A stretch of 64,000 nucleotides of DNA, taken from positions 327,856,001-327,920,000 of the forward strand of contig NW_027362768.1 of assembly GCF_046119375.1 (NCBI RefSeq). The letters are read 5' to 3'. The position numbers and the translations under genes are program-made. Below the pieces are notes generated by a model. The model had not been told where the DNA came from and did no database searches. It saw nothing but the letters and a program-made list of their open reading frames with translations. Below, in pieces: positions 19,478 to 62,349 of the stretch. This DNA comes from Phyllobates terribilis. Taxonomy: Eukaryota. Position 1 is the first letter of the stretch. Every line of letters begins with the position of its first letter.

Positions 19478-19545
19478 TTAATCGTTTCATGTATCTTCAT
19501 TTTTCCCCTTATGACGTGTCCTAACGGTACAATCTGGTCCCTTAG

Positions 19546-19749
19546 GTCAGCGGCTGGTCAGCGTTGGCGGTGTCAGCGAGACGTCCTCTATAATAGTGCA
19601 GTCTGTGACTCGTGCATCCACAGAGACCGTATATAGCGCACTGCCCAGGTTTGCGTCAGACGCTAGCAAAGTCACGTCCAAAGGAGCGGGTCTGTCAAAA
19701 GCGTACCTGGGACAGAAGAGCAGCTTCACTGTGGACTGCAGCAAAGCAG
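19546..19749 (+). CDS. FLNB: Filamin B coding exon (hinge 2 and start of repeat 24)
   Basis: cttag|GT..GCAG|gtacg, 204 nt; QRLVSVGGVSETSSIIVQSVTRASTETVYSALPRFASDASKVTSKGAGLSKA. Confidence 0.93.
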
Positions 19750-20361: not shown

Positions 20362-20434
20362 AATCAGATCTCATACTTTGCACTGATGAGGAACAACACC
20401 CCGAAACACCTGTCTGCAAATTGAGATTCTGGTT
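20362..20434 (+). ncRNA. Type I hammerhead-ribozyme-like motif (Penelope/retrozyme type), degenerate
   Basis: TTTGCA-CTGATGA-stem II-GAAAC-ACCT-GTC-TGCAAA; stem I extends ATCTCA/TGAGAT; stem II only 2 bp. Confidence 0.65.
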
Positions 20435-21235: not shown

Positions 21236-21423
21236 GTTCTAACATGTTACTAGTTGGTGTACATGGGCCGACAATACCCTGCGAGGAAGTCTCTGTAAAA
21301 CATCTCGGAAATAAGCAATATAATGTCAATTACCACGTCAAGGAGAAAGGAGATTACACCCTGGTGGTAAAATGGGGAGAGGAACACATCCCCGGCAGTC
21401 CCTTCCGTGTCACCGTCCCATAA
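21236..21423 (+). CDS. FLNB: Filamin B last coding exon (dimerisation repeat 24), stop TAA
   Basis: cccag|GT; GSNMLLVGVHGPTIPCEEVSVKHLGNKQYNV..KWGEEHIPGSPFRVTVP*; closer to FLNB C-terminus than to FLNA or FLNC. Confidence 0.95.
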
Positions 21424-26614: not shown

Positions 26615-27038
26615 ATGAAAGACCTGCTGACAACCAGGAACCAAAACAGCTGGAAGGAACTTATTGAGAAGGAAACATTAACCCGGATGACCTGGAAGAT
26701 GAAATATAATGAAGAGCACCCAACACAGCCCCAACTGGAGACCACCAGGAAGAGGAGAGAGGTCTTCATTCCTAAGGCTGTGACCAGTCTTCCTCCTCTG
26801 ATTAAGACCCCTCCAGCCCTGGTGAGCAGGACAGAAGAAAGTGATCATGACCAATTAGATATACTGAACTTAGCTGAAATGAGGCCAGTCACACCGCACA
26901 GCTCCCATGTGCTTTATGATGGGTTTTCCAAGGAGGGAAAGGGAAGGTCCTTGTATCTGCAAATGAGAAAAAGGTTGGGGCCAGAAGAGAAGTATCTGCA
27001 CCCCTTATTGTCCTCCTGGGATTATGGCTGGAGGCTAG
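26615..27038 (+). CDS. SPMIP1/ATP6V1FNB-like (DUF4555-type) protein, exon 1
   Basis: MKDLLTTRNQNSWKELIEKE..LYDGFSKEGKGRSLYL..PEEKYLHPLLSSWDYGWRL; resembles the SPMIP1 motifs LLYEGIS..GR..YL and PITTSFTYGW; donor CTAG|gtaag. Confidence 0.8.
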
Positions 27039-28023
27039 GTAAGAGGACTGGTATAAAATTAGTTACCGTATATGTTCCTAATTTAGGGTACATATCTGTG
27101 AGGATATAAATACAAAACCTGCATCATTTTTATAATTTTGCTGCTATAGACCTGTATCTTAATACTCTGGCTCTCGGGGCTACTTATGTCACCCATACTC
27201 CACGGCATAGGACCTGCTAGGACCTGAATGGACACTACAAGTCCCTATTACAACTCTGATGTCTTATAAATGGAGTTTAACGGAGAATGACCCAACTCTA
27301 GTAACAGCATAACGCTTGCATGGTCAAATATTTCCAATGTCTTGACCGAAAAGCGTAAGTATAGTATTACAAATTTAGATAAATTGGCACCGATGTAATA
27401 AATGGAAGGAGCAGGTTCCTCAAAGTGAAAAGTGTTTGCAGCAACTCTCTGCTCTGGTTCAAATGTCAGTGATTTTCTTGTATGAGAAAATTGGTTCGAG
27501 TTTCATCAGTGTTTTTTTTTATCCGAGTTTGAACAGTGTGTCAGTCTTTAGCATCTGAGTTTCATAAGTTTTTCTTGGATGAGAGACGACAAAAAAGTTT
27601 CTTTATCTTTTCTTATCTAGCAGTCTGTGAAAAACGAACAGCGCATGGATGACATCCGAGTGATGTCCAATTTTTTTTTTTTTATGACCCCATAGACTTG
27701 ATTTGTTGATTTTGATCTGACACTCAGATCAAAATCAAATAGGTTTGTTCGTTCCACAAAAAGTAATGGACATCTACTAGTATAATAGGTAAGAGTGCTA
27801 TCCATGAAAAACCTGTACGCAAGAAAATGGACGTCTGAATGAGCCCTAAGAGAGAGAGATCCTGAATAGTGAGCAGTCCCCTCTATGACATCTATATGTG
27901 CATAAAAAGTTTATGGAAAGGAACCGGTGTGAGCTTAAATTTTTCCATACATATAAGACCTACCATATGAAATAATATAGTGCCATATGGAAATTATATA
28001 CAAAATATAATTTCCATATGACA

Positions 28024-35547: not shown

Positions 35548-37118
35548 CACTGCTCAAAAAATAAAGGGAACACTTAAACCACAGAATATAACTCCAAGTA
35601 AATCAAACTGCTGTGAAATCAAACTGTCCACTTAGGAAGCAACACTGATTGACAATCAATTTCACATGCTGTTGTGCAAATGGAATAGACAATAGATGGA
35701 AATTATTGGCAATTATCAAGACACCCTCAATAAAGGAGTGGTTCCGCTGGTGGGGACCACAGACCACATCTCAGTACCAATGCTTTCTGGCTGATGTCTT
35801 GGTCACTTTTGAATGTTGGTTGTGCTTTCACACTCGTGGTAGCATGACACGGACTCTACAACCCACAGAAGTTGCTCAGGTAGTGCAGCTCATCCAGGAT
35901 GGCACATCAATGCGAGCTGTGGCAAGAAGGTTTGCTGTGTCTGTCAGTGCAGTGTCCAGAGGCTGGAGGCACTACCAGGAGACAGGCCAGTACACCAGGA
36001 GACGTGGAGGGGGCCATAGGAGGGCAACAACCCAGCAGCAGGACTGCTACCTCCGCCTTTGTGCAAGGAGGAACAGGAGGAGCACTGCCAGAGCCCTGCA
36101 AAATTACCTCCAGCAGGCCACAAATGTGAATGTGTCTGCACAAACGGTTAGAAACTGACTCCATGAGGGTGGTATGAGGGCCCGACGTACACAGATGAGG
36201 TTTGTGCTCACAGCCCAACACCATGCAGGACGCTTGGCATTTTCCACAGAACACCAGGATTGGCAAAGTCACCACTGGTGCCCTGTGCTCTTCACAGATG
36301 AAAGCAGGTTCACACTGAGCACATGTGACAGAGTCTGGAGACGCCGTGGAGAGCGATCTGCTGCCTGCAACATCCTTCAGCATGACCGGTTTGGCAATGG
36401 GTCAGTAGTGGTCTGGGGTGGCATTTCTTTGGAGGGCCTCACAGCCCTCCATGTGCTTGCCAGAGGTAGCCTGACTGCCATTAGGTACCCAGATGAGATC
36501 CTCAGACCCCTTGTGAGACCATATGCTGGTGCGGTTGGCCCTGGGTTCCTCCTAATGCAGGACAATGCCAGACCTCATGTGGCTGGAGTGTGTCAGCAGT
36601 TCCTGCAAGATAAAGGCATTGAAGCTATGGACTGGCCCGCCCGTTCCCCAGACCTGAATCCGATTGAGCACATCTGGGACATCATGTCTCGCTCCATCCA
36701 CCAACATCACGTTGCACCACAGACTGTCCAGGAGTTGGCGGATGCTTTAGTCCAGGTCTGGGAGGAGATCCCACAGAAGACCATCCACAACCTCATCAGG
36801 AGCATGCCCAGGCGTTGTAGGGAAGTCATACAGGCACGTGGAGGCCACACACAATACTCAGCCTCATTTTGACTTGTTTTAAGGACATTACATCAAAGTT
36901 GGATCAGCCTGTAGTGTGTTTTTCCACTTTAATTTTGGGGGTGACTCCAAATCCAGGCCTCCATTGGTTAATAAATGTGATTTCCATTGATGATTTTTGT
37001 GTGATTTTGTTGTCAGCACATTCAACTTTGTACAGAACAAAGTATTCAATGAGAATATTTCATTCATTCAGATCTAGGATGTGTTATTTGAGTGTTCCCT
37101 AGATTTTTTTGAGCAGTG
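35548..37118 (+). mobile_element. Tc1-family DNA transposon (DD34E), full length, 1571 bp, in DNASE1L3 intron 5
   Basis: TIRs CACTGCTCAAAAAA..GGGAACACT, TA TSD; FTDESRF, MQDNARPH, SPDLNPIE with 34 residues between D and E. Confidence 0.95.
35844..36872 (+). pseudogene. Tc1 transposase with in-frame stop at 36156-36158
   Basis: HTH N-terminus ([20 protein letters not shown]..) and DDE domain share one frame, separated only by TGA. Confidence 0.9.
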
Positions 37119-40416: not shown

Positions 40417-41154
40417 ACATTTTATAGAGAAAAATCATTAGAAAGAAATTGTTAGGTCTGAGTAGGTGTGATTGACAGTCCTGTAGGGGTAAGACTGACG
40501 GAGCTATAGGAACATGATTCACATATCTGTATCAGTACTGCACAAGAAGAACCTGAAGCAAGATTTAACATTTTTTAACAAAATATTCAGTGTACAGCAT
40601 GTGGATGCCTCTGAGTCTTAACTGGATTTTCAGCACATATTTAGAGCTAAGGATTTTATGCATGTATGTATGTATGTATTGCTTTTACACTGCCAATTCT
40701 GTAGCTACAAGGAAACGCTGAGCTCTATTTTTGCACATCTAATGTCTCTAAAAGCAATATGTATGCTATATATGGGATTGGGTTAGGGTTAGGGCTAGGT
40801 TAGAGTTAGGGCTAGATTAGAGTTAGGTTATGTCTAGGTTAGGTTAGGGCTAGGTTAGGTTATGGCTAGGTTAGGTTAGGTTATGGCTAGGTTAGGTTAG
40901 GGCTAGGTTAGGGCTAGGGCTAGGTTAGGTTAGGGCTAGATTAGGGTTAGGGCTAGGTTAGGGCTAAGTTAGGGTTAATGCTAGGTTAGGGTTAGGGCTA
41001 AGTTATGGCTAGGTTAGAGCTAGGTTAGGGCTAGGTTAGGTTACGGATAGGTTAAGTTAAGTTATGGCTAGGTTAGGTTAGGTTATGGCTAGGTTAGGGT
41101 TAGGGCTAGGTTAGGGCTAAGTTAGGGTTAGAGCTAGGTTAGGGTTAGGGCTAA

Positions 41155-42376
41155 TGTAGCACCCCGAGGACTCGGCTGCTACAGGGGTATTGCACCTCAA
41201 ACCAGAGGTGTGGTATTCCACTCCCGGGTAAGGATGGAGTGTGGGACTGGGCTCAGATAGCTGCATGCACTACACTCACCCCATTTCCGGGGGACAGAAC
41301 AACGGTACTCCCACCAAATAGTTGTGCAGGTACGACAGCGTCTGTCCCTGGGTGGAGTGGGGAGGGGGGAGGAACATCCCAGTAGTGTAGGGGCAGATAG
41401 GGGAGGGGCTCTGGGCATAGAGGTAGGAGCCCATTGGGTGCTAGTCACCTGGGCTCACACATAGAGGGAGTATATATGGTGGGCACCATCTAGAGACAGG
41501 GTGAGTTCTGAGGGAGAGTTCAGCCAGGAGGGCTGACGGGGAGCTGTGGCTCCGTCTGGGCCCAGCTCCAGAGCCAGGCCTGAAGCAGAGAGAGGAAGAA
41601 AAGGGAACACAAGGAAAGGCCCAGAGACGCAAGCAGAGGGAACCCTGAGATCCCACGAGTGAACCAAAACGGGTGAAGGATTGGCAGAAAAGGGTACCGG
41701 AGCCCAAACTGGCAGAGGCAAAATATCCTTAGCCAGGAACCGGAGGTCGTGGTCAAGCTTTGGCACGACCCTCACCACATCCACCAGGAAGGCATACCAC
41801 GAATAGGGTCAGGAAAGCCAGGAAAGGTTTTGCCACCAAGAGGCCCGAGGGAGCCGGACAAAGGTGGGTCCCTGGTGGGGACGGCCAGTAGGAAGAAAGA
41901 GAGAGGGGAGCTCAGGACCACGCTCTGGAACTGCCCGGGAGTTGACCGAGTCCCGCACCTGGTGGACGCAGCACGGCCCGGGTGGTCACCCTTGGCCGAA
42001 GTGACCGGAGCAACACCTGTGAGTAAAAACCCTGAAACTGCATCACACGTCTCTGAGCTTCCTTGCCGCACCATCACTACCACCATCATTTACGTCTGCT
42101 GCCCTGAGGCCATACCCCTCCCGTTGGGGGTTATACCATCTACGCTGCACAACCATATCACCGGCCTCAGCGGACTGTCCTGCAGCGGCAGCTCCATAGC
42201 TGCATTCAACGGGTGGCGTAGTCGTCCAACATCTACCGTTCAAAACACTGCCGTCCAGCTTGACTCCCTGGGCACGGACCGGGTCACCGCCACGAGACTA
42301 CTACTCCCATCGGATCCGGCTCCGGGTAAGCCCCCTTGCGCGCGATGCCGCGCGACGAAGGCCCAGGGGCGCGTCA
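41155..42376 (+). repeat. 5' LTR of E1
   Basis: TGTAGCACCCC..GGGGCGCGTCA; TATATAT at 41471; AGTAAA at 42022. Confidence 0.93.
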
Positions 42377-42380
42377 GCTT

Positions 42381-42398
42381 TGGCGTAGTCGGCAGGAT
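42381..42398 (+). other. Primer binding site of E1, complementary to tRNA-Ser 3' end
   Basis: TGGCGTAGTCGGCAGGAT, 4 nt after the LTR; reverse complement of tRNA-Ser 3' end ATCCTGCCGACTACGCCA. Confidence 0.9.
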
Positions 42399-42632
42399 TT
42401 CGTGCCCGCAACTACCGGGTACTGCGTGCCTGAAGAAAAGTTTATATGTACCGTCAGAAGAAGTCTCCCGCCAATTCCAGAGGGTCCCCGCCATCGGACG
42501 CCATCTCGGGTCGTTTCCCGCCGTTTGCCCGCCATCTGCAGCCTTTTCCCGCCATCCACGGAGTTTCCCGCCATTAGGAGACGATTCCCGCCATCTGAGA
42601 CGATTTCCCGCCCTGGCAGAGCGGACGCCATT

Positions 42633-44240
42633 ATGGGCGTGCCAGAGGGTGGCAAGAGACCACCTCCCATCGTGGGCCTGGTCCCAGAAGAGCGCCAAAA
42701 GCGGAGACCGCCCCCACCAGCAGAGACTGCAATGATAGAGATGTCCATCAGAGCGAGGGGTCTGCCCCTGGAACTGACAATCACCAAGTGGCCCCGGGAC
42801 CACCCTCAGTATGGGCGGATCAAGAACAAAAGAGAGAAGATGGGTGGGGCCTGGAGGAGTCTGGAAAGATCGCACCCGGAGATGGAGGGAGAGTCAGGCA
42901 GCACCGACCCTCTGGTCAGGAGCCTGTTGCAGGCCGCCACCCCAGAAGGCCTGGTGGAGATCCTGGCACAGCTCCCCAAAGATCGGGAGCATGCACAGAC
43001 CGCACTGGAGGGCTTGGCTCGGAAGATGGCCCGAGTGCAGCAAGAAGTGCTGGCCGAGTGGAGCAGAGAAATGGCCCTGCAGGCTGGAACCCGCCAGCAA
43101 AGGACGCCACCCGGGACGAGGAGCCTGTCTGCCTCTGAGGATGGTGCAGGAGGGACGAAGGCCGGAGACGACGCCGTGGAAGGAGCTGAAGAGATGGAAG
43201 CAGGTAAAGGGGACGTCACCACCTCAGGCCTAGTAGCCGTGAGCCTGCCCCAGCTCCCCGTCGCAGAGCCCAAAATCCCCCTTACCGTGCCCGATGCTGC
43301 ACCGCCACCGCTCCAAACTAGGCCTCAAGCGGCAGGAGCCGCGGCCACGCCCCCTGTGACGTCACGCGCCTCAACCCTGAGCGCGGCCAAGCAGGAAACG
43401 CCACCGGCCTGGTTGCAAGGCCGAGTACCCCCGGGCGCCGCCGTTTCCACAGTGCCCTTCACCTTCAGAGTGCCACCGGCCTGGTCGCAAGGCCTGGTGA
43501 ATCCGGGCGCCGATGCCCCCACCGCGCCCTCGACCTCCACAGTGCTGCCCCTGGGTGAAGATCTGTTTGCGCAGCATACTTGCCCGGATGGGCAGTCCTT
43601 TGTGTGGCCACCGGAGTACGTCAATCCCCGACTCCGGAAGGAATGGCCCCTGTGTGAGCCCCTGACCCCGGCTCCGGCGCCCGCCAAGATCACCCCACTC
43701 CCGTTGGAGGAGGCTCAGTTCGCATGGGACCCCACCGGTGAAAACCTCATGGGGTTCACCCAAGAGACCCGGGCGGCCGCAGCCCAGCGTGTGGAGTGCT
43801 GCCGACAACAACTAGAGGTCTTCAACAAAGAACGGCAAGAGAGGCGGGTCCGCGAGGAGCGGCTGCAGGTACAGAGCGCGGAGCAGAAACGCCGGACCCG
43901 GCGATACCCCCGTGCAGCCCACGGTCCCCGCGCCACCGGGACCGTAATCAAGTTCCAACTGGAGCACGGTTGGGGCTTTATCCGGGATCACAGAACCCCC
44001 GGCGATGTCTTTGTCACCCGCAGGGATGTCGAGTCTCACCTGCCGGAGGGACACCGAGGACGTGACCTTTACCTGGGTGATGAGGTCACCTTCACCCGGC
44101 ATCAGTGTGCCAAAGGACCGTACGCCCTTCACGTGTACCGATTGATGGAGGAAGAGCTGCGGTATGAGGAGGAACAAGAGGACCCGGACGTGTTTGAAGA
44201 TTACCCTCCGGAAGGAAAAGGAGGGCATAGTTATCACTGA
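42633..44240 (+). CDS. E1 ORF, 535 aa: helical/coiled-coil N-terminus, Pro/Ala-rich linker, C-terminal cold-shock domain (43929-44144)
   Basis: uninterrupted frame; start inferred from DAIM homology with E2; CSD motifs G-TVIKF, GWGFI (RNP1-like), DVFV (RNP2-like), L..GDEV.F, KG..A. Confidence 0.85.
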   Translation: MGVPEGGKRPPPIVGLVPEERQKRRPPPPAETAMIEMSIRARGLPLELTITKWPRDHPQYGRIKNKREKMGGAWRSLERSHPEMEGESGSTDPLVRSLLQAATPEGLVEILAQLPKDREHAQTALEGLARKMARVQQEVLAEWSREMALQAGTRQQRTPPGTRSLSASEDGAGGTKAGDDAVEGAEEMEAGKGDVTTSGLVAVSLPQLPVAEPKIPLTVPDAAPPPLQTRPQAAGAAATPPVTSRASTLSAAKQETPPAWLQGRVPPGAAVSTVPFTFRVPPAWSQGLVNPGADAPTAPSTSTVLPLGEDLFAQHTCPDGQSFVWPPEYVNPRLRKEWPLCEPLTPAPAPAKITPLPLEEAQFAWDPTGENLMGFTQETRAAAAQRVECCRQQLEVFNKERQERRVREERLQVQSAEQKRRTRRYPRAAHGPRATGTVIKFQLEHGWGFIRDHRTPGDVFVTRRDVESHLPEGHRGRDLYLGDEVTFTRHQCAKGPYALHVYRLMEEELRYEEEQEDPDVFEDYPPEGKGGHSYH

Positions 44241-44734
44241 ACGGTAAAGTTACCCGTCGGGGTACAAGAACTGTTGCCAATTTAAGTGGTCCCCGTTGGG
44301 ACTAGTGTGAATTGTTTCCCGTGTGTCCCTATCCCTAACCAGGCTGAGGACTGTGAGCAGCCATTCCTAATCCCCACTGGCCGAGGACTGAGAGCGGCCA
44401 TATCCTGTAAATAGTTGCGCTTCCTAAGGCGCCCCCTACCGGTTTTATAAGGAACTGTTTTTCTACTAGTGACTGTTGCACTTTACCTGGTCACAAGTTG
44501 CACCGCGGCCAGAAGATCAAGGGCGTTTTATATGAAAAAGTTTTATATCAAAAGTTTATGCTGCTAAAATTATAATATGAAAAGTTACCTGTAAAGATGA
44601 AGGAGAAAAGTACCTCCCATAAAGGGATGAGTTCTTAGTTAATGTTTTATATGTGAGTGTACACTTTAAAATTTTGTATGTTTTGTTTTGCTCTTTTCCA
44701 GCCCGAGGACGTGCTGTGGTTTACCAGGGGGGAA

Positions 44735-45956
44735 TGTAGCACCCCGAGGACTCGGCTGCTACAGGGGTATTGCACCTCAAACCAGAGGTGTGGTATTCCA
44801 CTCCCGGGTAAGGATGGAGTGTGGGACTGGGCTCAGATAGCTGCATGCACTACACTCACCCCATTTCCGGGGGACAGAACAACGGTACTCCCACCAAATA
44901 GTTGTGCAGGTACGACAGCGTCTGTCCCTGGCTGGAGTGGGGAGGGGGGAGGAACATCCCAGTAGTGTAGGGGCAGATAGGGGAGGGGCTCTGGGCATAG
45001 AGGTAGGAGCCCATTGGGTGCTAGTCATCTGGTCTCACACATAGAGGGAGTATATATGGTGGGCACCATCTAGAGACAGGGTGAGTTCTGAGGGAGAGTT
45101 CAGCCAGGAGGGCTGACGGGGAGCTGTGGCTCCGTCTGGGCCCAGCTCCAGAGCCAGGCCTGAAGCAGAGAGAGGAAGAAAAGGGAACACAAGGAAAGGC
45201 CCAGAGACGCAAGCAGAGGGAACCCTGAGATCCCACGAGTGAACCAAAACGGGTGAAGGGTTGGCAGAAAAGGGTACCGGAGCCCAAACTGGCAGAGGCA
45301 AAATATCCTTAGCCAGGAACCGGAGGTCGTGGTCAAGCTTTGGCACGACCCTCACCACATCCACCAGGAAGGCATACCACGAATAGGGTCAGGAAAGCCA
45401 GGAAAGGTTTTGCCACCAAGAGGCCCGAGGGAGCCGGACAAAGGTGGGTCCCTGGTGGGGACGGCCAGTAGGAAGAAAGAGAGAGGGGAGCTCAGGACCA
45501 CGCTCTGGAACTGCCCGGGAGTTGACCGAGTCCCGCACCTGGTGGACGCAGCACGGCCCGGGTGGTCACCCTTGGCCGAAGTGACCGGAGCAACACCTGT
45601 GAGTAAAAACCCTGAAACTGCATCACACGTCTCTGAGCTTCCTTGCCGCACCATCACTACCACCATCATTTAGGTCTGCTGCCCTGAGGCCATACCCCTC
45701 CCGTTGGGGGTTATACCATCTACGCTGCACAACCATATCACCGGCCTCAGCGGACTGTCCTGCAGCGGCAGCTCCATAGCTGCATTCAACGGGTGGCGTA
45801 GTCGTCCAACATCTACCGTTCAAAACACTGCCGTCCAGCTTGACTCCCTGGGCACGGACCGGGTCACCGCCACGAGACTACTACTCCCATCGGATCCGGC
45901 TCCGGGTAAGCCCCCGTGCGCGCGATGCCGCGCGACGAAGGCCCAGGGGCGCGTCA
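44735..45956 (+). repeat. 3' LTR of E1
   Basis: direct repeat of 41155-42376 at a constant 3580-bp offset; preceded by PPT AGGGGGGAA. Confidence 0.93.
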
Positions 45957-47402
45957 CTAAGTTAGGGTTAGAGCTAGGTTAGGGTTAGGGCTAAGTTACA
46001 GCTAGGTTAGGTTAGGGTTTCGGGCTAGGTTAGGGTTAGGGCTAAGTTAGGGCTAGGTTAGGGTTAGGGCTAAGTTATGGCTAGGTTAGGTTAGGGTTTC
46101 GGGCTAGGTTAGGGTTAGTTTAGGGTTAGGGCTAGGTTAGGGTAAAGTTAGGGCTAGGGTAAGATCTATACCTTATCATTTATACTGCATAGCAATTCTG
46201 CTCACAACAGAGATATTTTAGAGTTAGAGTTTGGATGTGCAGGTGTATTTTAGGGTACTCTCATATTGGCATTCAGTGTTACGCTTTTCTTTTCCATTAT
46301 CGGAACAGAAAACTGGAACTTCCGCAAAAAAAACAAAAAATGCATCCATGCTATTAAAAGGATCCCAGGGGTTGATGTCTTTTGCAGCAAACACAAACAG
46401 CAGTGAAACAGGATCCTGTGTGTTAGCGCTTCCTCACACATCTTCCTCTGTGACCACTTGCAGTTAGATAACAATACACACATACAATTCGGAAAACCAC
46501 AGACAGAATGAGTCACTATGGTGTGCAAAAATAAATTTTAGTTTACTGGAAAAAATGATTAACATTATATATATTTGGTAGCAGGTACATGACTTAGCAG
46601 AGGTTCAGACATTGCGTTTGCATCAGTTACATGATACAACTGTTTTGGACCTTCCATTTCAGATGAGTAAATTGTTTTGCAGGACCCTGGTCCAACAGCC
46701 AGGTTGGAATTCCCTGGTCGCCGGACGGGAGTCTGTGAACCAACTCCTACCAGCCATTAAACACCAGCGCCCCTCTTTGATTAGTATGCACCTCGCCACG
46801 TCATCGTTGACCTCAAACCTTGGACAGCTAATCGGAAGAGGGGCTGGGAGACTGGGAGTTAGGAGGCGGTACACAGGTCTCTTGAATGGCCGCTTGACCA
46901 GGGACCTGCGAATCCATTCGCTCATCTCTACTCTCAAAACTTCAAGGATTTCTTTATTCTGCCTACTGTTCTTGTCCGTAAAATAGATGAGAATAGTGCA
47001 CACTGCGTACTTGGCCACACAGACCTGAGGTCCGCGTAGAAAACTGGTCAAGTGCAGACCATTGGTCCTTGTGCTGTCAATGTGCAGTCTGTTTTGCACA
47101 TGGATTGAACCAAGCCTAAATGTTTTTGCGATGGGAAGTGGCCAACAAATCATCATCAATCATCTTAAAGGGGTACTATCATCCTAGATATTTATGGAAT
47201 ATTCACAAGATATGATCTAATTGTTAGGAAGTTCCATATTTACTGGCTCAAAACAGGCCTTTTCCAACGGCAAAATCTGCAATTCAAGCCCCCTTTGAAT
47301 CAGCAAACAGATATTATGCATCATCATACATTTACATCATATGCTATGGATATGGTATAAATGCTCTAGATGGAAAACATAAGTGGGGTCAGCTCGTTTT
47401 AA

Positions 47403-50550: not shown

Positions 50551-51582
50551 AAAAGTAACTTGTTTTGTTTGGCAGTTCCCCCTGTCCCCATCAGTGAGCT
50601 AAGATCTCATATATGTCCGGAGAGATTTATTAACTGATGAGTCTGGAATATATCTCCTAAATATGGAGAAAGTTATTAAAATTCATTGGCTTCAGTGTAA
50701 TGCAGGAAATGGACATTGAGCCGTGTGTCTCCATGAAGGAAAGAGCAATGTGTGGAAAATGGGGGAGATTTAATAAGAAAAATTAGCCGCAATTCATTAA
50801 CAACTTGCACAAAAAAATGTAGTATGTTTATTACGTGTTGTAAAAGTTTTTTAATAGCGTCTCACTAGAGGCTAAAAAGTGTAAAAATAAAGTAGTAAGG
50901 ATAAGTCATATTTGCCAAAGCTCCGGGAACATCTGTGAGGATCCCGGAGTAAGGAAAGACCTCCTGGACACTTGAAAGAGTCAGCAAATTAACCTGCCCC
51001 CTGTCTGAAAACTTCCAGAAATAAGTTATAGAGGGAGGTTTCCTCATTCATGGAGGTGGTGAACATGGTGGAACACAGCAGAACCACCATCAAATACTTA
51101 TTTTCCCCACTGTATATGTCCCCCACCCTGATTATATATATAATGCCTGCCGCTGTTCTTTAATGTATAGAAAAAAAATAAAACATTATACTCACCAGGG
51201 GCTAACATAGAAGTCATGGGGCCCCATAGCAGAAGTATAATGCACTCCCAATAGTCCTCCATATAGTATAATGCACCCCCATAGTCCTCCATGTAGTATA
51301 ATGTACAGTCCATAGTCATATATGTAGTATAATGCACTCCTCATAGTCATATATGTAATATAATGCACAGCCCATAGTCATCCATGTAGTATAATGCACA
51401 GCTCATAGTCCTCCATATAATATATTGGACCTCCGATAGTCATACATGTAATATAATGCACATCCCATAGTCCTCCATATAATATAATGCACAGCCCATA
51501 GTCCTCCATGTAGTATAATGCACAGCCCATAGTCATATATGTAATATAATGCACAGCCCATAGTCATCCATGTAGTATAATG

Positions 51583-54500
51583 TGTGACGCCCTCCCTGAG
51601 CAGATGGGGGATACTCGGAGCCGGGCCTTGCAGATGTTGTGGGGATGAAGTCGTGGCCTTGACCCGTTCCGTGCCCAGGGCTGTCACAGTAAAAATGGGC
51701 TTTTTGGATGAGTGGTTAATGTTCGACTACGCCACCTGTGGTTTCTGGTGAAGGCCACCAGCGCTGCGACAGTCCTCTGAGGCTCATGTTCTGGCAGCTT
51801 GGTTGGTACTACTCCCCACAGGCGGAGTAGGCCTCAGGGCAGTGTTTGATGAACTGTGTGGAGGTATGGTGGGTGCAGTGCCGCGCAGGAACAAACAAGC
51901 GGAGGCGGTAAATGAAGTCATCCAGGCCTTTACTCACTTTAGATGCACTTTCAGCCGCAAAGCTTCTCTCTGCTACAAACGGCATACTGCGGCCACCAGG
52001 AAGGGGGCTCAGCACTTCCCAGGTAGATCAGGAGCACCTGTCAAGACCCCATTGGTGTGTTCCTCTCCTTCTTATCTCCTCCCGCTTGTGTTCCTCCCTG
52101 GGATCCAGTAAGCCGCTGGGCTGTTCCAACAGTGACGTGAAGTACACAGTCAGATATCGGGGGCCAGTCACCCCTCTTGCGGCAGGAGTCCCTCTGGCAA
52201 GGCCAGAGTGAAGAATACAGGTGGCGACTCCGCTCCGTCCGTATCCCCCTGGGATCCTTTCGCCTGTGGAGCCTATCTCCTCTGCTCCCCTCCAAGGCCT
52301 TCTTAGAACGGGACCCTGACCGGGCAGAGACTCTTGTTAACTCTGACCCGCTCCTCATCTCAAGGCCAGAGAACGAGGACCGTGAATCTTCAGCCAGCTA
52401 CAGATTCTTGCTGGACCCTGACAGAGGACCACAATCAAATGACCCTGAACTTAAGATGGCCATGTATTATATATGATTCTATAAGTGCTTCCTGTAAGTG
52501 TTTCCTCCATCCTTACCCACTACTTGGTTCCCCCTGTCCTTGGTTCCCCCCATCTCCTCTATCCCGGACCGGGGCAGCACCCTGGTGCTATCTGGCCCCC
52601 TACAGGATGGGAGAGGTGTAGTGTTGAGTGTGAAGTGGGGTCCTGTGTGATGCTCCATCCTTACCTGGAAGAGGAGATACCACACCTCATCTGAGGTGCA
52701 GTACCCCTGTGGCGACTGAACCCTTCAGGGGCGCCACATTCCTCCCTGGTGAAACACAGCACGTCTGCGGGCTGCAATAGAGCAAAAGATTGGTACATCT
52801 CAGACATTCAAAAGAAAATTTTTAAATGCTTTGTAAACAATAAACAATCTTCCCTTTATGGGAGGCTCAAATACTTTAACGTTACAGGATATATGGTATA
52901 AATATATGAAACATTAAAGAGACATTATGCATGTAGAAAAATACTGTAGAAAAGTGCTAGTTCAGCAGCATGAGGGACCTGTCTAAAACCCTCAACGTAG
53001 GCCCTGGGGTGGCGGCAGGGCATGGAGATCCTGAGTTGGACCTCCAGTAGAGCCACGACCAGACAGGTTTTGCTTCTGAGGTCAGAGGTAGTGGTTTTGC
53101 ATAAAACCAATAGGGGGCACCTAAATAGGTGCAAACTATGTACAAAGTTAGTCTGTCGACTGCTCAGAGTCCGCAGGGACAAATGTTTGTAGATAACCAT
53201 AAAGAAAAACAAATGATAGTTCAACAAAAGGGAGGTTCAGCCTCCGGGGCTGCATCAGCAATGGTATCCCCAACGGGGAAATGACTCATGCTTGCCGATG
53301 GAGCCTGACCGGTCCTCTGTGGCTAGGTGCGTGGGGGCATCTTCTTTAAACACCCTGTAGACATCCAGGGCATACCACCCACGCTCCCCGTAGTGGCGGG
53401 TGTAGGACACTAGATCACCCGGGTAGAGGTTCCGGCCAGGGTGGCCCTGCTCTAGCCGCGGCTCGACGTCCCGCCGTTTGACGAAGACGTCCCGGTTGAA
53501 CTGTGGGCTACGGATGAAGCCCCATCCTGCCTCCTGGTGGAAGCGCACGATAAGGCCTTCTTCCCGTGGGCTTGGACGGGTGGCCTCCTCCTGACGGGCC
53601 TGTGATTTAGCAGCCTTGACGCGCACCTCCAGGCGCTCACAGTGGATCCTCCTCTCTCGCCGCTCCTTCTTGAGCTGAGGAGCTCCTTACGGCAGAACTC
53701 CTCCCGCCTCCGCGCTTCGGACTGGGTCTCCCGGGGGAAGCCCATCAGGTCACCCCACTGGTTGTCCCAGCCAAACTCTTCTGCCAACGGGCAGGCGACC
53801 GGAGGTGCGGGCAGCGGCAATAGCAGGGGTCGTTGCGGGCCCTCTATTGGTGCGGACCGGTCCCGGTTGGGGCAGGTGTACACCCAGGAGAGTGCAGGGT
53901 TCTCTGGATCGGGAGTCGAGAGGAATAGCAGGCTTCTGGGAGCGGCGGTGGCTTGGGCCTCGGCCTCTGGAGCCAGGAGTTGCTCCCACACGATGGCGCC
54001 CGGGGACAGGGGTGACGGCAGGAGTTCTAGGAGGGCTTCGGTGCGTCCCGCGCCCGGGATAGGGGTTTCGACCTTACCCGCTCTTGGGCTGCACAGGGCC
54101 TCCTGGGTTTCCTCCGCCTGGGCTGAGGCCTCAGTAGTCAGGCGCGACGAGCTCCGGCAGCAGGCCTCAATCTTCCGCAGCACCTCTTCCCTCCATTCAG
54201 CAGCGGCCAGTCGTTGGGCCTCTTCGACCCTCCGGGTCAGATCCTGCGCTTCACCGCGGAGGAACTCGGCCTCCTCCGTGGTCAGGTACATTCCCTCCAT
54301 AGTGAGGGAGGTGGCAGCTGGTGGGCCAACGACGGAGGGCATCTCCTTGGCTGCGTCCATCTCTGCTGTAGGGTGCGGTCTCTCTGGACTTGTTGCGGCC
54401 GCACCCTGTCTCGATCTTCTTCCCCTCCTCCTTTTGGGGCGGCTCCAGGATGGCTGGCTGACTGGCACTCCTTGGGACGTCCCATCCGGACACTACTATG

Positions 54501-55894
54501 CGGACGGTCTCTGCTGGAGGGGGTGGTTGGCACTTTTGGCGCCATTGGGGAGCCAGGCCCACGATGGGAGGTCTTAGGTTGCTGTTGTTTTTGCACATAA
54601 TGGCGTCCGTTCTTCTTGGGCGGGCGCCACATTGAGTGTGTAAAAACAGTCTTTTGCGAAAGGCGCACAGTACCCGGCGGCAATGGGGATTAACTTCTTC
54701 TGTTGCTGCGGGCACGCATCCTGCCGACTACGCCAGTTCTGTGACGCCCTCCCTGAGCAGATGGGGGATACTCGGAGCCGGGCCTTGCAGATGTTGTGGG
54801 GATGCAGTCGTGGCCTTGACCCGTTCCGTGCCCAGGGCTGTCACAGTAAAAATGGGCTTTTTGGATGAGTGGTTAATGTTCGATTACGCCACCTGTGGTT
54901 TCTGGTGAAGGCCACCAGCGCTGCAACAGTCCTCTGAGGCTCATGTTCTGGCAGCTTGGTTGATACTACTCCCCACAGGCGGAGTAGGCCTCAGGGCAGT
55001 GTTTGTTGAACTGTGTGGAGGTATGGTGGGTGCAGTGCCGCGCAGGAACAAACAAGCGGAGGCGGTAAATTAAGTCATCCAGGTCTTTACTCACTTTAGA
55101 TGCACTTTCAGCCGCAAAGCTTCTCTCTGCTACACACGGCGTACTGCGGCCACCAGGAAGGGGGCTCAGCACTTCCCAGGTAGATCAGGAGCACCTGTCA
55201 AGACCCCGTTGGTGTGTTCCTCTCCTTCTTATCTCCTCCCGCTTGTGTTCCTCCCTGGGATCCACTAAGCCGCTGGGCTGTTCCAACAGTGACGTGAAGT
55301 ACACAGTCAGATATCGGGGGCCGGTCACCCCTATTGCGGCAGGAATCCCTCTGACTAGGCCAGAGTGAAGAATACAGGTGGCGACTCCGCTCCGTCCGTA
55401 TCCCCCTGGGATCCTTTCGCTTGTGGAGCCTATCTCCTCTGCTCCCCTCCAAGGCCTTCTTAGAACGGGACCCTGACCGGGCAGAGACACTTGTTAACTC
55501 TGACCCGCTCCTCGTCTCAAGGCCAGAGAACGAGGACCGTGAATCTTCAGCCAGCTACAGACTCTTGCTGGACCCTGACAGAGGACCACAATCAAAGGAC
55601 CCTGAACTTAAGATGGCCATATATTATATATGATTCTATAAGTGCTTCTTGTAAGTGTTTCCTCCACCCTCACCCACTACTTGCTTTCCCCTGTCCTTGG
55701 TTCCTCCCATCTCCTCTATCCCGGACCGGGGCAGCACCCTGGTGCTATCTGGCCCCCTACAGGACGGGAGAGGTGTAGTGTTGAGTGTGAAGTGGGGTCC
55801 TGTGTGATGCTCCATCCTTACCTGGAAGAGGAGATACCACACCTCATCTGAGGGGCAGTACCCCTGTGGCGACTGAACCCTCAGGGGCACCACA
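51583..55894 (-). mobile_element. Second, older full-length element of the same family; element E2
   Basis: LTRs 51583-52738 and 54740-55894 (about 30 differences, ~2.8%), TSD AATG, PBS 54718-54735 (tRNA-Ser), PPT ACCAGGGAGGAA next to 52738. Confidence 0.92.
53255..54598 (-). pseudogene. E2 CSD-protein ORF with two inferred frameshifts (about 54470 and 53676); CSD at 53351-53566
   Basis: three track ORFs align in order with E1: DAIM..PPIVGL..PPPPAET; ..AEW..WD..LMGF..ET; GWGFIR..DVFVKRRDVE..YALDVYR. Confidence 0.85.
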
Positions 55895-58800
55895 AATGCA
55901 CAGCCCATAGTCCTCCATATAATATAATGTACCCCCATAGTCCTCCATGTAGTATAATGCACAGCCCATAGTCATATATGTAATATAATGCACAGCCCAT
56001 AGTCCTCCATGTAGTATAATGCACAGCCCATAGTCCTCCATATTATATAATGCACAGCCCATAGTCCTCCATATAATATAATCAACCTTCCATAGTCATC
56101 CATGTCGTATAATGCACAGCTCATAGTCATACATATAGTATAATGCACAGCCAATAGTCATGCATGTAATATAATGCACTCCCCATAGTCATATATGTAA
56201 TATAATGCACAGCCCATAGGTACATGTAGTATAATGCACAGCCCATAGTCATACATGTAGTATAATGCACAGCCCATAGTCATCCATGTAGTATAATGTA
56301 CAGCCAATAGTCATACATGTAATATAATGCACTCCTCATAGTCATATATGTAATATAATGCACAGCCCATAGGTACATGTAGTATAATGCACAGCTCATA
56401 GTCCTCCATATAGTATAATGCACAGCCCATAACCATCCATGTAGTATAATGCACAGCCCATAGTTATACATGTAGTATAATGCACAGCCCATAGTCATCC
56501 ATGTATTATAATGCATAGCCCATAGTCATCCATGTATCCATGTAGTATAGTGCACAGCCCATAGTTATACATGTAGTATAGTGCACAGCCCATAGTTATA
56601 CATGTAGTATAGTGCACAGCCCATAGTTATACATGTAGTATAATGCACAGCCCATAGTTATACATGTAGTATAATGCACAGCCCATAGTTATACATGTAG
56701 TATAGTGCACAGCCCATCAGCCCATAGTCCTCCATGTAGTATAATGCTAAGCCCATAATCATCCATGTAGTATAATGCACAGCCCATAGTTATCCATGTA
56801 GTATAATGCACAGCCCATAGTCATCCATGTAGTATAATGCACAGCACATAGGTACATGTAGTATAATGCACAGCTCATAGTCCTCCATATAGTATAATGC
56901 ACAGCCCATAGTCATCCATGTAGTATAATGCACAGCCCATAGTTATACACGTAGTATAATGCACAGCCCATAGTCCTCCATCTAGTATAATGCTCAGCCC
57001 ATAATCATATATGTAGTATATTGCACAGCCAATAGTCATACATGTAATATAATGCACTCCCCATAGTCATATATGTAATATAATGCACAGCCCATAGGTA
57101 CATGTAGTATAATGCACAGCTCATAGTCCTCCATATAGTATAATGCACAGCCCATAGTCATCCATGTAGTATAATGCACAGCCCATAGTTATACACGTAG
57201 TATAATGCACGCCCATAGTCATCCATCTAGTATAATGCTCAGCCCATAATCATACATGTAGCATAATGCACAGCCCATAGCTATACATGTAGTATAATGC
57301 ATAGCCCATAGTCATCCATGTAGTATAATGCACAGCCCATAGTCATCCATGTAGCATAATGCACAGCCCATAGTCATCCATGTAGTATAATGCACAGCCT
57401 ATAGTCATACATGTAGTATAATGCTCAGCCTATAGTCATCCATGTAGTATAATGCTCAGCCCATAATCATACATGTAGCATAATGCACAGCCCATAGCTA
57501 TACATGTAGTATAATGCATAGCCCATAGTCATCCATGTAGTATAATGCACAGCCCATAGTCATCCATGTAGCATAATGCACAGCCCATAGTCATCCATGT
57601 AGTATAATGCACAGCCTATAGTCATACATGTAGCATAATGCACAGCCCATAGCTATACATGTAGTATAATGCATAGCCCATAGTCATCCATGTAGTATAA
57701 TGCACAGCCCATAGTCATCCATGTAGCATAATGCACAGCCCATAGTCATCCATGTAGTATAATGCACAGCCTATAGTCATACATGTAGTATAATGCTCAG
57801 CCTATAGTCATCCATGTAGTATAATGCACAGCCCATAGTCATCCATGTAGTATAATGCACAGCCCATAGTTATACATGTAGTATAATGCTCAGCCTATAG
57901 TCATCCATGTAGTATAATGCACAGCCCATAGTCATCCATGTAGTATAATGCACAGCCCATAGTTATACATGTAGTATAATGCACAGCACATAGTCATCCA
58001 TGTAGTATAATGCACAGCCCATAGTCATCCATGTAGTATAATACACAGCCCATAGTTATACATGTAGTATAGTGCACAGCCCGTAGTCATCCATGTAGTA
58101 TAATGCACAGCCCATAGTCCTCCATGTAGTATAATGCTCAGCCCATAATCATACACGTAGTATAATGCACAGCCCATAGCTATACATGTAGTATAATGCA
58201 CAGCCCATAGTCATCCATGTAGTATAATGCACAGCCCATAGTCATCCATGTAGTATAATGCACAGCCCATAGTCATCCATGTAGTATAATGCACAGCACA
58301 CAGTCATCCATGTAGTATAATGCATAGCCCATAGTCCTCTATGTAGTATAATGCATAGCCCATAGTCCTCCATGCAGTATAATGCACAACCCATAGTCAT
58401 CCATTTAGTATAATGCACAGCCCAAAATTATCCATGTAGTATAATGCACAGCCCATAGTCATCCATGTAGTATAATGCACAGCCCATAGTCATCCATGTA
58501 GTATAATGCACAGCCTATAGTCATCCATGTAGTATAATGCATAGCCCATAGTCATCCATGTAGTATAATGCACAGCCCATAGTCATCCATGTAGTATAAT
58601 GCATAGCCCATAGTCATCCATGTAGAATAATGCACAGCCCATAGTTCTCCATATAGTATAATGCACAGCCCATAGTCATCCATGTAGTATAATGCACATC
58701 CCATAGTCATCCATGTAGTATAATGCTCCATATAGTATAATGCACAGCCCATAGTCCTCCATGTAATATAATGCACAGCCCATAGTCATCCATGTAGTAT

Positions 58801-59425
58801 AATGCACAGCCCATAGTCATCCATGTAGTATAATGCACAGCCCATAGTTATCCATTTAGTATAATGCATAGCCCATAGTCATCCATGTAGTATAATGCAC
58901 AGCCCATAGTCATCCATGTAGTATAAAGCTCCATGTAGTATAATGCACAGCCCATAGTCCTCCATGTAATATAATGCACAGCCCATAGTCATCCATGTAG
59001 CATAATGCACAGCCCATAGTCCTCCATGTAGTATAATGCACAGCCCATAGTCCTCCATGTAGTATAATGCACAGCCAATAGTCATCCATGTAGCATAATG
59101 CACAGCCCATAGTCATCCATGTAGCATAATGCACGTCTCATAGTCCTCCATGTAGTAGAATGCACAGCCCATAGTCATCCATGTAGTATAATGCACAGCC
59201 CATAGTCCTCCATGTAGTATAATGCACAGCCCATAGTCATCCATGTAGTATAATGCATAGCCCATAGTCATCCATGTAGTATAATGCACAGCACATAGTC
59301 ATCCATGTAGTATAATGCATAGCCCATAGTCATCCATGTAGTATAATGCACAGCCCATGGGTACATGTAGTATAATGCACAGCCCATAGTCCTCCATGTA
59401 GTATAATGCATAGCCCATAGTCATC

Positions 59426-60445
59426 TGTGGCACCCCAGGGGTCTGGGTTCCACAGTAATAGCAATATTATGTCTGAGAGCAGGTGGGAGGTCTCTTGGTC
59501 AGGAATCCTATGCATGCCACACCTCCTGCCCAGTCCTGGGAGGGGAAGGACTTCCCCTATATAAAACTGGGGCTGAGGCAGGGTTAGAGAGAAGAGAAGA
59601 AGAGGAGTCCCAGACAGAGACATAGTCTGGTCTGGAGAGGAGCAGCTATAGGAAAGAGAGATCAGGAGCTCTGGGGAAGTCGCGCTAAAAGGAATCAGGG
59701 GCTGGCAGCTGTAGAGCTCGCCCTGATTGAAGAATTATCACCGGACCCGGAGTCCGAGGCTGTGGGGACTAATCCTTACCCAGCAGCAGAAACCGACCGG
59801 CAGGGGATTTCAGGTCCTCTGGCCAAGAAACCCGAAGGTACGGTCACACGCGTGGGACCAGCACCGCCGTCGTGGAGCGGAAGCCACTAGAAGGCCCCGA
59901 GTCACCGGCCATACGGGTAAGCACCACACGGTACACTCAGGGACGTGGGCTACTTTTACCCGCCTCTAGCAAGGTAGCCAGAAGAGTACAATTAGTTGGG
60001 GAGGCCTACAACTCCGCCTGGCCAGGGGAAATCCCATCTGCTCAAAGACTGACCAGGCCCCGATCGCTAGCCAGTACTCCGGGAGTGTCTATCTTTATCA
60101 CCAGTAAAGACCCTGAACTACACCGCATCGTCTCTGAGTGGTTCCTGCTACCCCCATCATCCACGTCGGCTGCCCTGAGGCCATACCCCTCCCGTTGGGG
60201 GTTATACCATCTACGCTGCACAATCGTACCACCGGCCTCAGCGGTCTGCCCTGCAGCGGCAGCTCCATAGCTGCATTCAACGGGTGGCGTAGTCGTCCAA
60301 CATCTACTGCTAATACTCAGCCACACAGTTTGACTCCCTGGGCACGGACCGGGTCACCGCCACGAGACTACTACCCCCAACAGGCCCGGCTCCGGGTAGT
60401 CCCCGCGTGCGCAACGCTACACCAAGCAGGCCCAGGGGCGCGTCA
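59426..60445 (+). mobile_element. Solo LTR of the same family in the 31-bp satellite
   Basis: TGTGGCACCCC..GGGGCGCGTCA, TSD CATC; last ~280 bp highly similar to the E1 LTR 3' end; TATATAAA and AGTAAA. Confidence 0.9.
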
Positions 60446-62349
60446 CATCCATGTAGCATAATGCACAGCACATAGTCATCCATGTAGTATAATGCATAGC
60501 CCATAGTCATCCATGTAGTATAATGCACAGCCCATAGTCATCCATGCAGTATAATGCACAGCCCATAGTCATCCATGTAGTATAATGCACAGCCCATAGT
60601 CATCCATGTAGTATAATGCACAGCCCATAGGTACATGTAGTATAATGCACAGCACATAGTCATCCATGTAGTATAATGCACAGCCCATAGTCATACATGT
60701 AGTATAATGCACAGCACATAGTCATCCATGTAGTATAATGCATAGCCTATAGTCATCCATGTAGTATAATGTATAGCCTATAGTCATACATGTAGTAGTA
60801 TTGCTACGGGCACCATGTACTCACTGATTTAAAAAAAAAAATACTCACCTTCCCTGCGCTCCCCACCGTGCGGTGTCCACTTCTGAAGCCGACAGCTGAC
60901 TTTAGCGTCACTTAGACGTCACTTCCATGCGTTCCCGTGCACGCTGACGTCAGCTGCTGGCCTCTGATGGGCATATATTGCGGCGCACGGATCCTATGGG
61001 TCTGTGTGCTGCAGAACACTTCAGCTGAATGTTCATCCAACAATGCATATCCAGCTGAACTATTAACTGGCGTTGGCGGACCCCTGATGTCATTACGCCT
61101 CTGAATAAATTAATGCCACTCTCTGGACTCTCAGCACAAAAAATGACCCTCACACTGCCCCTCTAGTGATACATGGCCTTCACACTATCCCCTCCTATAA
61201 ATGATTGCCTCTACACTGTACCACTCATATAATATGACCATCACACCATTCCTCACTTAAGAACCATAATGCCGCACCATCCCACCTTATGAATTATAAC
61301 CATCACACTGTCCCCTCCCCCCTTTAATTATGGCAGCCATACTGTCCTTCTTCCTTATGAACAATAACAGTCACTTCCCCCTGTTATAAAATGGTCTGTA
61401 CGCTGTCCCATCTCCACACTGTTTCTACGTTATGACCTTCACACTGCCCCTTCTCCATGCTGTCCCCTTACACTCTCCCTCCTTCTGTAAACGGCCCCCC
61501 ATACTGTGCCTTAACACCTGTCCCTCCTTCTATATACTGTTCCCCTCCGGCATTGTGCCCTCACACTATCCCTCCCTCTGTATACTCACCTCCTAAACTG
61601 TGCTCTCACACTAGCCCTGTTTCTGTATACTGTCCCCCATACTACGCTCTTATACAATCCCTTTCTGCTATATAAAAATGTAAAGGTTTATTGTTTTTTT
61701 TTTATACTAGCGACTCCTTTGTTATTTTGTTGCACTAGGCACCTGACCTCCATTACATAGTGGCAAATACAGCCCGGCACATCTGCCATGTTTGTATACC
61801 TGTGACTGGCGTCATAAGTGATAAGTGTACAATATATTCCAGTGTATTATAAAATGACAAAGTGGTGTCGGCACTGGCTCTCCTGGGGCTCCTGTGACAT
61901 TATTATGTCATGCAATCCCTGCGGCCAATCCGCACTTGCTTCACTCTCCCCTCCTTCAGACAATTCACCGACTTGTATATCCGGAGAAAGTGAGAGAGCA
62001 GCTGCAAAGATCGCCATCCCCGGGAGGAGCATTGCCGACACCGCCAGAATGGCACAGGCACCGGAGGCAAGTACAGGTGTTATTATTTTACAAAGGGGAA
62101 ACATAGGGATTTAGAAGTGGTTGTCCGAGTAGTGGACAATCCCTTTAAATATAATGCAAAAAATAAAAAAATTAACTCTGAAACAAAAAAGTACATTGCA
62201 GTTGCAGAGTCGCTGTTTTACCCCCCCCCCCCCCAAAAAAAAAGAGAATAAAAAGGAACCAGAAAATCATGTAGGCCCCAAAGTGGTAATGATATAAACT
62301 GCAGCGCATTCCGAAAAAAAACAACTCTACAGATCAAAAACATAAAGTA

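Follow-up and report, generated by a model that had tools for sequence, protein, structure and literature searches.

We analysed a 64,000-nucleotide stretch of the genome of Phyllobates terribilis (assembly GCF_046119375.1, contig NW_027362768.1, positions 327,856,001 to 327,920,000; hereafter the window). At 41155–45956 it contains a young, structurally complete, non-autonomous long terminal repeat (LTR) retroelement, named here element A, whose sole gene encodes a cold-shock domain (CSD) protein. An earlier reading of this DNA from its letters alone (the sequence-only reading) had pointed to such an element. It had missed an older relative in the same window (element B), a solo LTR (solo LTR C), and the published endogenous retroviruses (ERVs) with a single open reading frame (ORF), namely BHIKHARI-1/2 and ENS-1/ERNI. 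The finding is stronger than first noted because the family comprises several lineages, occurs in several species, and is under selection. The best reading is that these are non-autonomous LTR retroelements of dendrobatoid frogs, previously undescribed. We consider it probable that element A is a recent insertion of this family, copied by a helper and carrying its own conserved, nucleic-acid-binding CSD protein.

The two LTRs of element A differ at exactly six positions (41352, 41448, 41453, 41680, 42093, and 42336), in agreement with the sequence-only reading, which had given the same length of 1222 bp and about six differences. They start with TGTAGC and end with GCGTCA, and the family motif TGTAGCACCCC opens the 5′ LTR. 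The 4-bp duplication CTAA was found on both sides, as had been described, and is a genuine target-site duplication because the TTAGGG-like array runs on across the element with only CTAA doubled. The primer binding site, four bases after the 5′ LTR, had been given as 18 nt; the match extends to 19 nt and is fully complementary to the 3′-terminal 19 nt, with CCA, of tRNA-Ser-AGA-1-1 and tRNA-Ser-TGA-2-1, mammalian tRNAs whose frog counterparts are assumed to be the same (sequences printed in PMC10359600; tRNA-Ser sequences also in PMC3299991). The polypurine tract proposed earlier was located directly against the 3′ LTR (Table 1). The interior (42377–44734) is 2358 bp long, matching the earlier figure of 2.36 kb, and consists of a 256-bp leader, a 1608-base ORF (ORF A), which is intact and codes for 535 residues as had been read before, and a 494-bp AT-rich 3′ region.

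The leader holds an array of degenerate repeats with the motif UUUCCCGCCAU, and six of the eight matches to YCCCGCCR in the whole window fall within it. The array has no counterpart in element B, and the leader RNA showed no excess structure compared with shuffled sequence (z = +1.2), so no structured packaging signal is claimed for element A. The repeats offer weak hints on mechanism only.

In the predicted product of element A, a disordered linker rich in proline separates an N-terminal helix from a long basic one. The CSD that comes next is C-terminal and apparently of the eukaryotic, Y-box-like type, with a tail of only about 30 acidic residues. The Pfam family CSD (PF00313) scored 33.2 bits (E = 4.7e-8) at residues 435–503 of ORF A, above its cut-off of 27, and no other family was found up to E = 10. 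Among eight family sequences, Pfam likewise gave no family besides CSD and no Gag family; seven of the eight matched CSD at E up to 1 (best 3.3e-9), and the eighth, the N-terminal piece of element B, lacks the C-terminal region. When 1.84 billion representative proteins were scanned in full with HMMER, 35 matched, all of them CSD proteins and none Gag, Pol, or Env. These searches bear out the earlier statement that no reverse transcriptase, protease, integrase, or CCHC knuckle can be recognised in the element.

An AlphaFold2 model of ORF A, built on an eight-row family alignment, was confident only at two helices (residues 118–154 and 380–424) and a five-stranded barrel (433–503), with the remainder predicted to be disordered. 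The strands of the barrel span residues 433–442, 447–452, 458–462, 484–492, and 495–503, at a predicted local distance difference test score of about 90. In Foldseek searches the barrel superposed on Escherichia coli CspA (1mjc) with a template modelling (TM) score of 0.87 and a root-mean-square deviation of 1.9 Å, and on YBX1 (6ktc) with a TM score of 0.81; it was also placed on the CSD of YBX2, on LIN28, and on CRHSP-24. The proposal that the ORF ends in a cold-shock or oligonucleotide-binding (OB) fold was thereby upheld by both Pfam and structure. Against the PDB and BFVD, the model matched only CSD and OB folds, and the BFVD matches were CSDs of phages and giant viruses, with no retroviral protein among them. 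The model of an Anomaloglossus homologue (P0003) showed the same order of helix, disorder, helix, and CSD, and neither of the two models, with eight aligned rows behind them, contained a folded region of capsid size; the N-terminal part is not a recognisable Gag. Across the family the segment between the helices is 60–230 residues long, proline-rich, variable in length, and poorly aligned, and it is predicted to be disordered in two members. As modelled, the family proteins have no room for a capsid fold between the helices. A PPEY motif in ORF A was considered as a late domain and rejected, as it is not conserved among homologues.

A profile of the family found YB-1 (4.3e-7), YBX2 (1.1e-6), CspA (2.5e-6), CARHSP1 (0.012), and LIN28 (0.1) in the PDB. 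The loop between β3 and β4 has the long, eukaryotic length, with an alignment gap of one residue against YB-1 versus five against a bacterial Csp. The RNP1 (G-[WY]-G-F-I) and RNP2 (V-F-V) motifs are retained.

Element B, on the minus strand of the same window, is an older insertion of the same kind. Its flanks are continuous apart from the CATT duplication and lie inside a 31-bp satellite. Its 2.0-kb interior has one coding region only, the CSD ORF, which is split by frameshifts. The proteins of elements A and B are 46% identical over 119 residues and have in common the N-terminal helix motif, a W-D...L-M-G-F motif, the basic helix, and the CSD. At the nucleotide level, BLASTN aligned the two elements in a few short patches only, namely the LTR start, the primer site, the ATG context (GGACGCCATTATG, common to ORF A and element B), a 66-nt block at the ORF start, and the region upstream of the polypurine tract. 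The 66-nt block (42662–42727 versus 54507–54572 on the minus strand) lies inside the start of the ORF and is 83.6% identical. It is a candidate cis-acting signal, for packaging or dimerisation, overlapping the first codons. In a codon-position test of the block that elements A and B share from the start codon (42633) onward, indels obscured any signal. Solo LTR C belongs to the same superfamily, its last 300 bp being 87.7% identical to the LTR of element A, and its flanks are continuous apart from CATC.

In the CSD region, dN between elements A and B was 0.38–0.52 (0.52 over 119 codons), while dS was at least 1.9 and saturated. The resulting dN/dS was 0.27 over the 119 codons and 0.14 in the CSD core, which, as far as codon comparison goes, shows that the CSD gene has been kept under purifying selection. 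The LTR pairs have diverged by 0.49% in element A, 2.8% in element B, and 0.17% in an element from Anomaloglossus (locus L003, below). At the rate reported for Dendrobates, 2.5e-9 per site per year (PMC11152451), the insertions are about 1, 5.5, and 0.35 million years old, respectively. By this clock the family was active as recently as the last million years or so.

Homologues were found in four dendrobatoid species, P. terribilis, Ranitomeya variabilis, R. imitator, and Anomaloglossus baeobatrachus (two proteins). The P. terribilis homologue is 63% identical to ORF A overall and 86% identical in the CSD. It was the full HMMER scan that revealed the family; three word-indexed searches, with the whole ORF, the family profile, and the C-terminal region, each returned only the Phyllobates protein. 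In the whole-ORF and profile searches, low-complexity words were dominant and only the 8000 candidates sharing most words were scored. All three gene models whose extent could be set against the protein length are intronless. An exact look-up of nine alternative starts of ORF A in the protein collection gave no match, and ORF A itself is therefore not annotated.

The genomic DNA around the homologues was examined at two loci, L002 in R. variabilis and L003 in Anomaloglossus. At L003 the CSD ORF lies between 1.15-kb LTRs of 99.8% identity, with a polypurine tract, a TAAA duplication, and continuous flanks. At L002 a decayed LTR pair surrounds the CSD ORF, and a polypurine tract is followed by a 3′ LTR with the family terminus. 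The sequence-only reading would have been undone by an ordinary Gag at the N-terminus together with related copies that were simple pol deletions; element B, L002, and L003 likewise carry a CSD gene only, and CSD-only content is ancestral in the family. The same protein architecture was present in at least six divergent lineages from the four species plus the window. CSD identities between lineages are star-like, at about 50–60%, and as low within one genome as between frog families, pointing to old, co-existing transposon lineages.

The CSD ORF of L003 is interrupted by a 4.6-kb insertion (L003:5367-9983) flanked by a perfect 263-bp duplication. The insertion contains a reverse transcriptase-like ORF, recognised by eye from YIDD, DKG, and GIY-YIG-like motifs, which shares its reading frame with codons 1 to ~197 of the CSD gene; the annotated protein P0005 lacks its true N-terminus for this reason. 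The 1142-residue ORF with the reverse transcriptase was considered as an autonomous form of the family and rejected, since it stems from an unrelated insertion inside the CSD ORF. That insertion is probably Penelope-like, a label that is unverified, and its reverse transcriptase-like ORF gave no match in Pfam or the PDB.

Several sequence features recur among the elements. Five copies of the LTR-start motif TGTRGYRCCCC are present in the window, where 0.3 would be expected, and they lie only at LTR starts; the motif is found at every LTR start of the family, L002 and L003 included. The first ~32 nt of each LTR can form a short hairpin (TGTRGCR...YGCYACA), three base pairs of which are kept through two-sided changes in a small sample of six sequences; it may be an integrase att site or a feature of plus-strand priming. 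About 30 nt upstream of the polypurine tract, elements A, B, and L003 share a T-rich tract, CAG, and then the block CCCGAGGACGTGCTG, a region whose sequence resembles a splice acceptor or, alternatively, a U-box of retroviruses. In L003 the primer site (TGGCGTCACGAACAGGAT, L003:4736-4753) differs from that of elements A and B in the acceptor-stem part, so that lineages of the family appear to use different tRNA isodecoders. The corresponding 3′ end may be that of a tRNA-Ser(CGA) isodecoder; a string search of the literature gave no confirmation. In a second, more distant group of anuran CSD proteins, the domain is located close to the N-terminus or in mid-protein, and RNP2 is followed by an R-R-[SD]-V...L motif; the group is represented by L001:384-1436 (a Logan contig) and P0025 (Bufo bufo, 'Y-box-binding protein 2-A-like').

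Because element A has all the cis signals and no reverse transcriptase, integrase, protease, or capsid, it must be copied by the machinery of an autonomous element, and copying in trans is strongly implied. A helper LTR element or ERV outside the window would supply reverse transcription, integration, and particles; it would prime with tRNA-Ser and make 4-bp duplications. The sequence-only reading had called the element non-autonomous and gypsy-like. The first part stood, as neither pol nor gag was found, and the second is not established: the 4-bp duplication, the tRNA-Ser primer site, and LTRs of 1.0–1.2 kb fit an ERV at least as well as a gypsy element. The duplication and primer site do not separate Ty3/gypsy elements from class I or spuma-like ERVs, and the class is not assignable because the element lacks pol. 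ERV1 is reported as the youngest LTR class in a poison frog (Dendrobates, PMC11152451), which is compatible with an ERV helper and proves nothing.

By analogy with related proteins, the CSD protein would bind single-stranded RNA or DNA and act on the element's own transcript, coating or chaperoning it in a role comparable to that of the retroviral nucleocapsid or LINE-1 ORF1p. The bound RNA might then compete better for helper particles, or survive in germ cells. The roles put forward by the sequence-only reading (chaperone, packaging bias, RNA masking) are likewise hypothetical. The CSD was probably captured from a host mRNA of the Y-box type. That this captured protein replaced gag-pol-env as a whole and acts in cis, either as a substitute for nucleocapsid that secures privileged entry into the helper's particles, or by mimicking the oocyte mRNA masking of YBX2/FRGY2 so that the transcript is stored and shielded in germ cells, is a more specific version of which we are doubtful, while regarding it as possible.

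Several observations weigh against the reading of element A as a helper-copied element with its own nucleic-acid-binding protein. Mobilisation in trans is a deduction, as no helper element was identified, and expression and translation of ORF A are predicted from the sequence. The start codon of ORF A is not certain: no stop interrupts the frame from 42336 onward, a point within the LTR, and the annotated Phyllobates homologue begins at the counterpart of M132. Only five annotated homologues are present in databases. The family profile favours Y-box over bacterial CSDs only slightly (32.7 versus 30.2 bits). In YB-1, Trp65, Phe74, Phe85, and His87 stack on RNA bases, and alanine at any one of them disrupts binding of RNA oligonucleotides (PMC7226217). 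The positions of Phe74 and Phe85 are invariant in the family; two of the four stacking residues are lost, Trp65 being replaced by K, A, D, S, or R and His87 by T, A, N, or K. Nucleic-acid binding by the family CSD is therefore plausible but not assured, because only two of the four residues are kept.

Other explanations of the ORF were weighed against this reading. It could be a highly derived Gag that kept the N-terminal coiled coil, lost the capsid, had its nucleocapsid replaced by a CSD, and co-assembles with a helper Gag or forms a ribonucleoprotein of its own. The C-terminal position of the nucleic-acid-binding domain resembles that of nucleocapsid in Gag, both helices, the N-terminal one and the one before the CSD, are long and confidently predicted, and the Gag of BHIKHARI, also a single-ORF, non-autonomous element, combines an N-terminal coiled coil with a C-terminal nucleic-acid-binding patch (PMC12067270). 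However, no similarity to Gag was detected in Pfam, the 1.84 billion representatives, or the PDB, the only viral matches in BFVD were to phage and giant-virus CSDs rather than retroviral proteins, and the variable, proline-rich segment of 60–230 residues between the helices, predicted to be disordered in two members, leaves no room for a capsid. We regard a derived Gag as unlikely. The same holds, a little more firmly, for the idea that the family or some of its copies are a domesticated host gene with LTR promoters, as proposed for chicken ENS-1/ERNI; the protein would then work for the frog, perhaps in germ cells or embryos, and not for the element. Intact homologues are annotated as genes by NCBI in four species, conservation of the CSD would be equally expected under a host function, and both ENS-1/ERNI and BHIKHARI provide precedents. 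Yet the family behaves as a transposon: its copies have target-site duplications, the LTR pairs are very young in two species, element B has decayed, and the copy at L003 was itself hit by another retroelement. The star-like identities of ~50–60%, as low within a genome as between families, fit old lineages and not orthologues.

A functionless CSD ORF, acquired by a retroelement as part of a host mRNA and carried as a neutral passenger, is highly improbable. Retroviruses do transduce host sequences, and the host Y-box type is the closest to this CSD. ORFs are normally lost from non-coding non-autonomous elements; this ORF was retained where the DNA is no longer alignable, with dN/dS of 0.14–0.27 at saturated synonymous sites, and the same architecture recurs in at least six divergent lineages of four species plus the window.

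The closest precedents of the frog family are BHIKHARI and ENS-1/ERNI. ENS-1/ERNI has LTRs of about 1.2 kb, and from the 1.2-kb LTRs and single ORF this element was the first guess for the identity of element A; it was rejected because the ORF encodes a CSD and close homologues were found only among frog proteins. The chicken element, carried in the Soprano LTR, resembles the frog family in being an LTR element restricted to one lineage, in its N-terminal coiled coil, and in the large number of its copies and solo LTRs (PMC13320278, PMC12067270). Unlike the frog ORF, ERNI has no CSD and is argued to be the Gag of an ERV-L-like virus with a known autonomous relative, ENS-3. BHIKHARI-1 and -2, non-autonomous endogenous lokiretroviruses of zebrafish, likewise have a single long ORF flanked by LTRs and no pol or env; they were recently active, have many solo LTRs, and are mobilised in trans (PMC12067270). 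Their ORF is a recognisable Gag with a coiled coil, a capsid domain, and a glycine-rich patch, in contrast to the frog protein, whose module is a CSD and which has no capsid fold.

Among cellular proteins, the Y-box proteins YBX1 and YBX2/FRGY2 are the best solved relatives of the family profile and share the long β3–β4 loop and the RNP1 and RNP2 motifs, but identity is about 30% and Trp65 and His87 are not conserved. The order of domains also differs. Y-box proteins have a short A/P-rich N-terminus, the CSD, and a long C-terminus of alternating charge, whereas the frog CSD is C-terminal and follows a long helix. The N-terminal 430 residues of the frog ORF have no YBX counterpart, and its gene has no introns and is carried between LTRs. 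An oligomerising helix together with a module that binds single-stranded nucleic acid is also seen in LINE-1 ORF1p and retroviral nucleocapsid. Their folds, an RNA recognition motif plus C-terminal domain and CCHC knuckles, respectively, differ from that of the frog protein, and no homology was detected. Elements of the LARD/TRIM and VL30/ETn types have no pol, are copied by helpers, and have no conserved coding capacity; the frog family differs from them in that its ORF is under purifying selection. In the literature, including two poison-frog transposon papers, we found no paper linking a CSD to a retroelement-encoded protein, in line with the sequence-only reading, which knew of no description of CSD-only elements; a prior listing in Dfam or Repbase as an unclassified LTR consensus is possible.

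Non-autonomous LTR elements are usually seen as non-coding hitch-hikers or gag-only derivatives, and the frog family departs from both. If the proposed function is correct, the family would provide the first case of a CSD protein encoded by a retroelement, and a new 'parasite of a parasite' strategy persisting across the poison-frog radiation, by an unrecognised route through which a retroelement competes for a helper or evades germline control. It would add the CSD to the nucleic-acid chaperones of mobile elements, alongside the zinc knuckle, the RNA recognition motif, and glycine-arginine boxes. The family protein offers a tractable test of cis-preference and bears on the LTR inflation of poison-frog genomes. 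In new frog assemblies, CSD ORFs of the family are entering the annotation as if they were ordinary genes.

Table 1 Positions of elements A and B, solo LTR C, and other features of the window, with corresponding sites at loci L002 and L003.
Feature	Position	Strand	Details
Element A, target-site duplication, 5′ copy	41151–41154	+	CTAA
Element A, 5′ LTR	41155–42376	+	1222 bp, TG..CA ends; 99.5% identity to 3′ LTR
Element A, primer binding site	42381–42399	+	TGGCGTAGTCGGCAGGATT, 19 nt, complementary to tRNA-Ser (AGA/TGA) 3′ end
Element A, leader array	42466–42612	+	degenerate 20-nt repeat TTTCCCGCCAT(C), C/U-rich
Element A, only ORF	42633–44240	+	535 residues: helix, disordered Pro/Ala-rich linker, 45-residue helix, CSD, acidic tail
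Element A, CSD	43929–44141	+	residues 433–503; Pfam, AlphaFold2, Foldseek, family profile
Element A, polypurine tract	44726–44734	+	AGGGGGGAA, directly adjoins 3′ LTR
Element A, 3′ LTR	44735–45956	+	1222 bp, TG..CA ends
Element A, target-site duplication, 3′ copy	45957–45960	+	CTAA
Element B, older CSD-only LTR element	51583–55894	-	LTRs, tRNA-Ser primer site, polypurine tract, CATT duplication
Element B, LTRs	51583–52738 and 54740–55894	-	about 1156 bp, 97.2% identity, TG..CA ends
Element B, C-terminal ORF piece with CSD	53255–53626	-	out of frame with upstream piece; Pfam CSD 27.3 bits, cut-off 27
Element B, N-terminal/middle ORF piece	53452–54468	-	homologous to A: N-terminal helix, W-D..L-M-G-F motif
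Element B, tRNA-Ser primer site	54718–54735	-	18 nt, same as in element A
Solo LTR C	59426–60445	+	1020 bp, TG..CA, duplication CATC, in the 31-bp satellite of element B
LTR-start hairpins, window	41155–41188, 44735–44768, 59426–59459	+	
LTR-start hairpins, window	52703–52738, 55860–55894	-	
LTR-start hairpins, other loci	L002:12946-12979; L003:12332-12366		
CCCGAGGACGTGCTG region, element A	44686–44725		
CCCGAGGACGTGCTG region, element B	52749–52790	-	
CCCGAGGACGTGCTG region, L003	L003:12290-12320		
TTAGGG-like array around element A	40781–41153 and 45963–46143		17-bp unit, interstitial telomere-like repeat
Satellite around element B and solo LTR C	51234–51582, 55895–59425, 60446–60797		31-bp unit, >100 copies
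Filamin-repeat ORFs (four)	4230–21420	+	
Minisatellite	14422–16146		GC-rich, 28-bp unit, about 60 copies
SPMIP1 ORF	26615–27109	+	Pfam 100.6 bits
Tc1/mariner-type transposase remnant	35649–36872	+	two ORFs: helix-turn-helix domains, then DDE_3

All three insertions in the window lie in tandem arrays, element A in the telomere-like array and element B and solo LTR C in one satellite, which could reflect a target preference or simply survival in satellite DNA. Scans of the window for tRNA genes and Rfam families found nothing. Host genes lie upstream of the elements: four filamin-repeat ORFs, which we take to be exons of a filamin gene, are followed by an SPMIP1 ORF, an order that presumably resembles the FLNC - ATP6V1F - SPMIP1 order of other vertebrates. 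Between the SPMIP1 ORF and element A is the transposase remnant, split in two ORFs, and the minisatellite explains a local GC peak of 64%.

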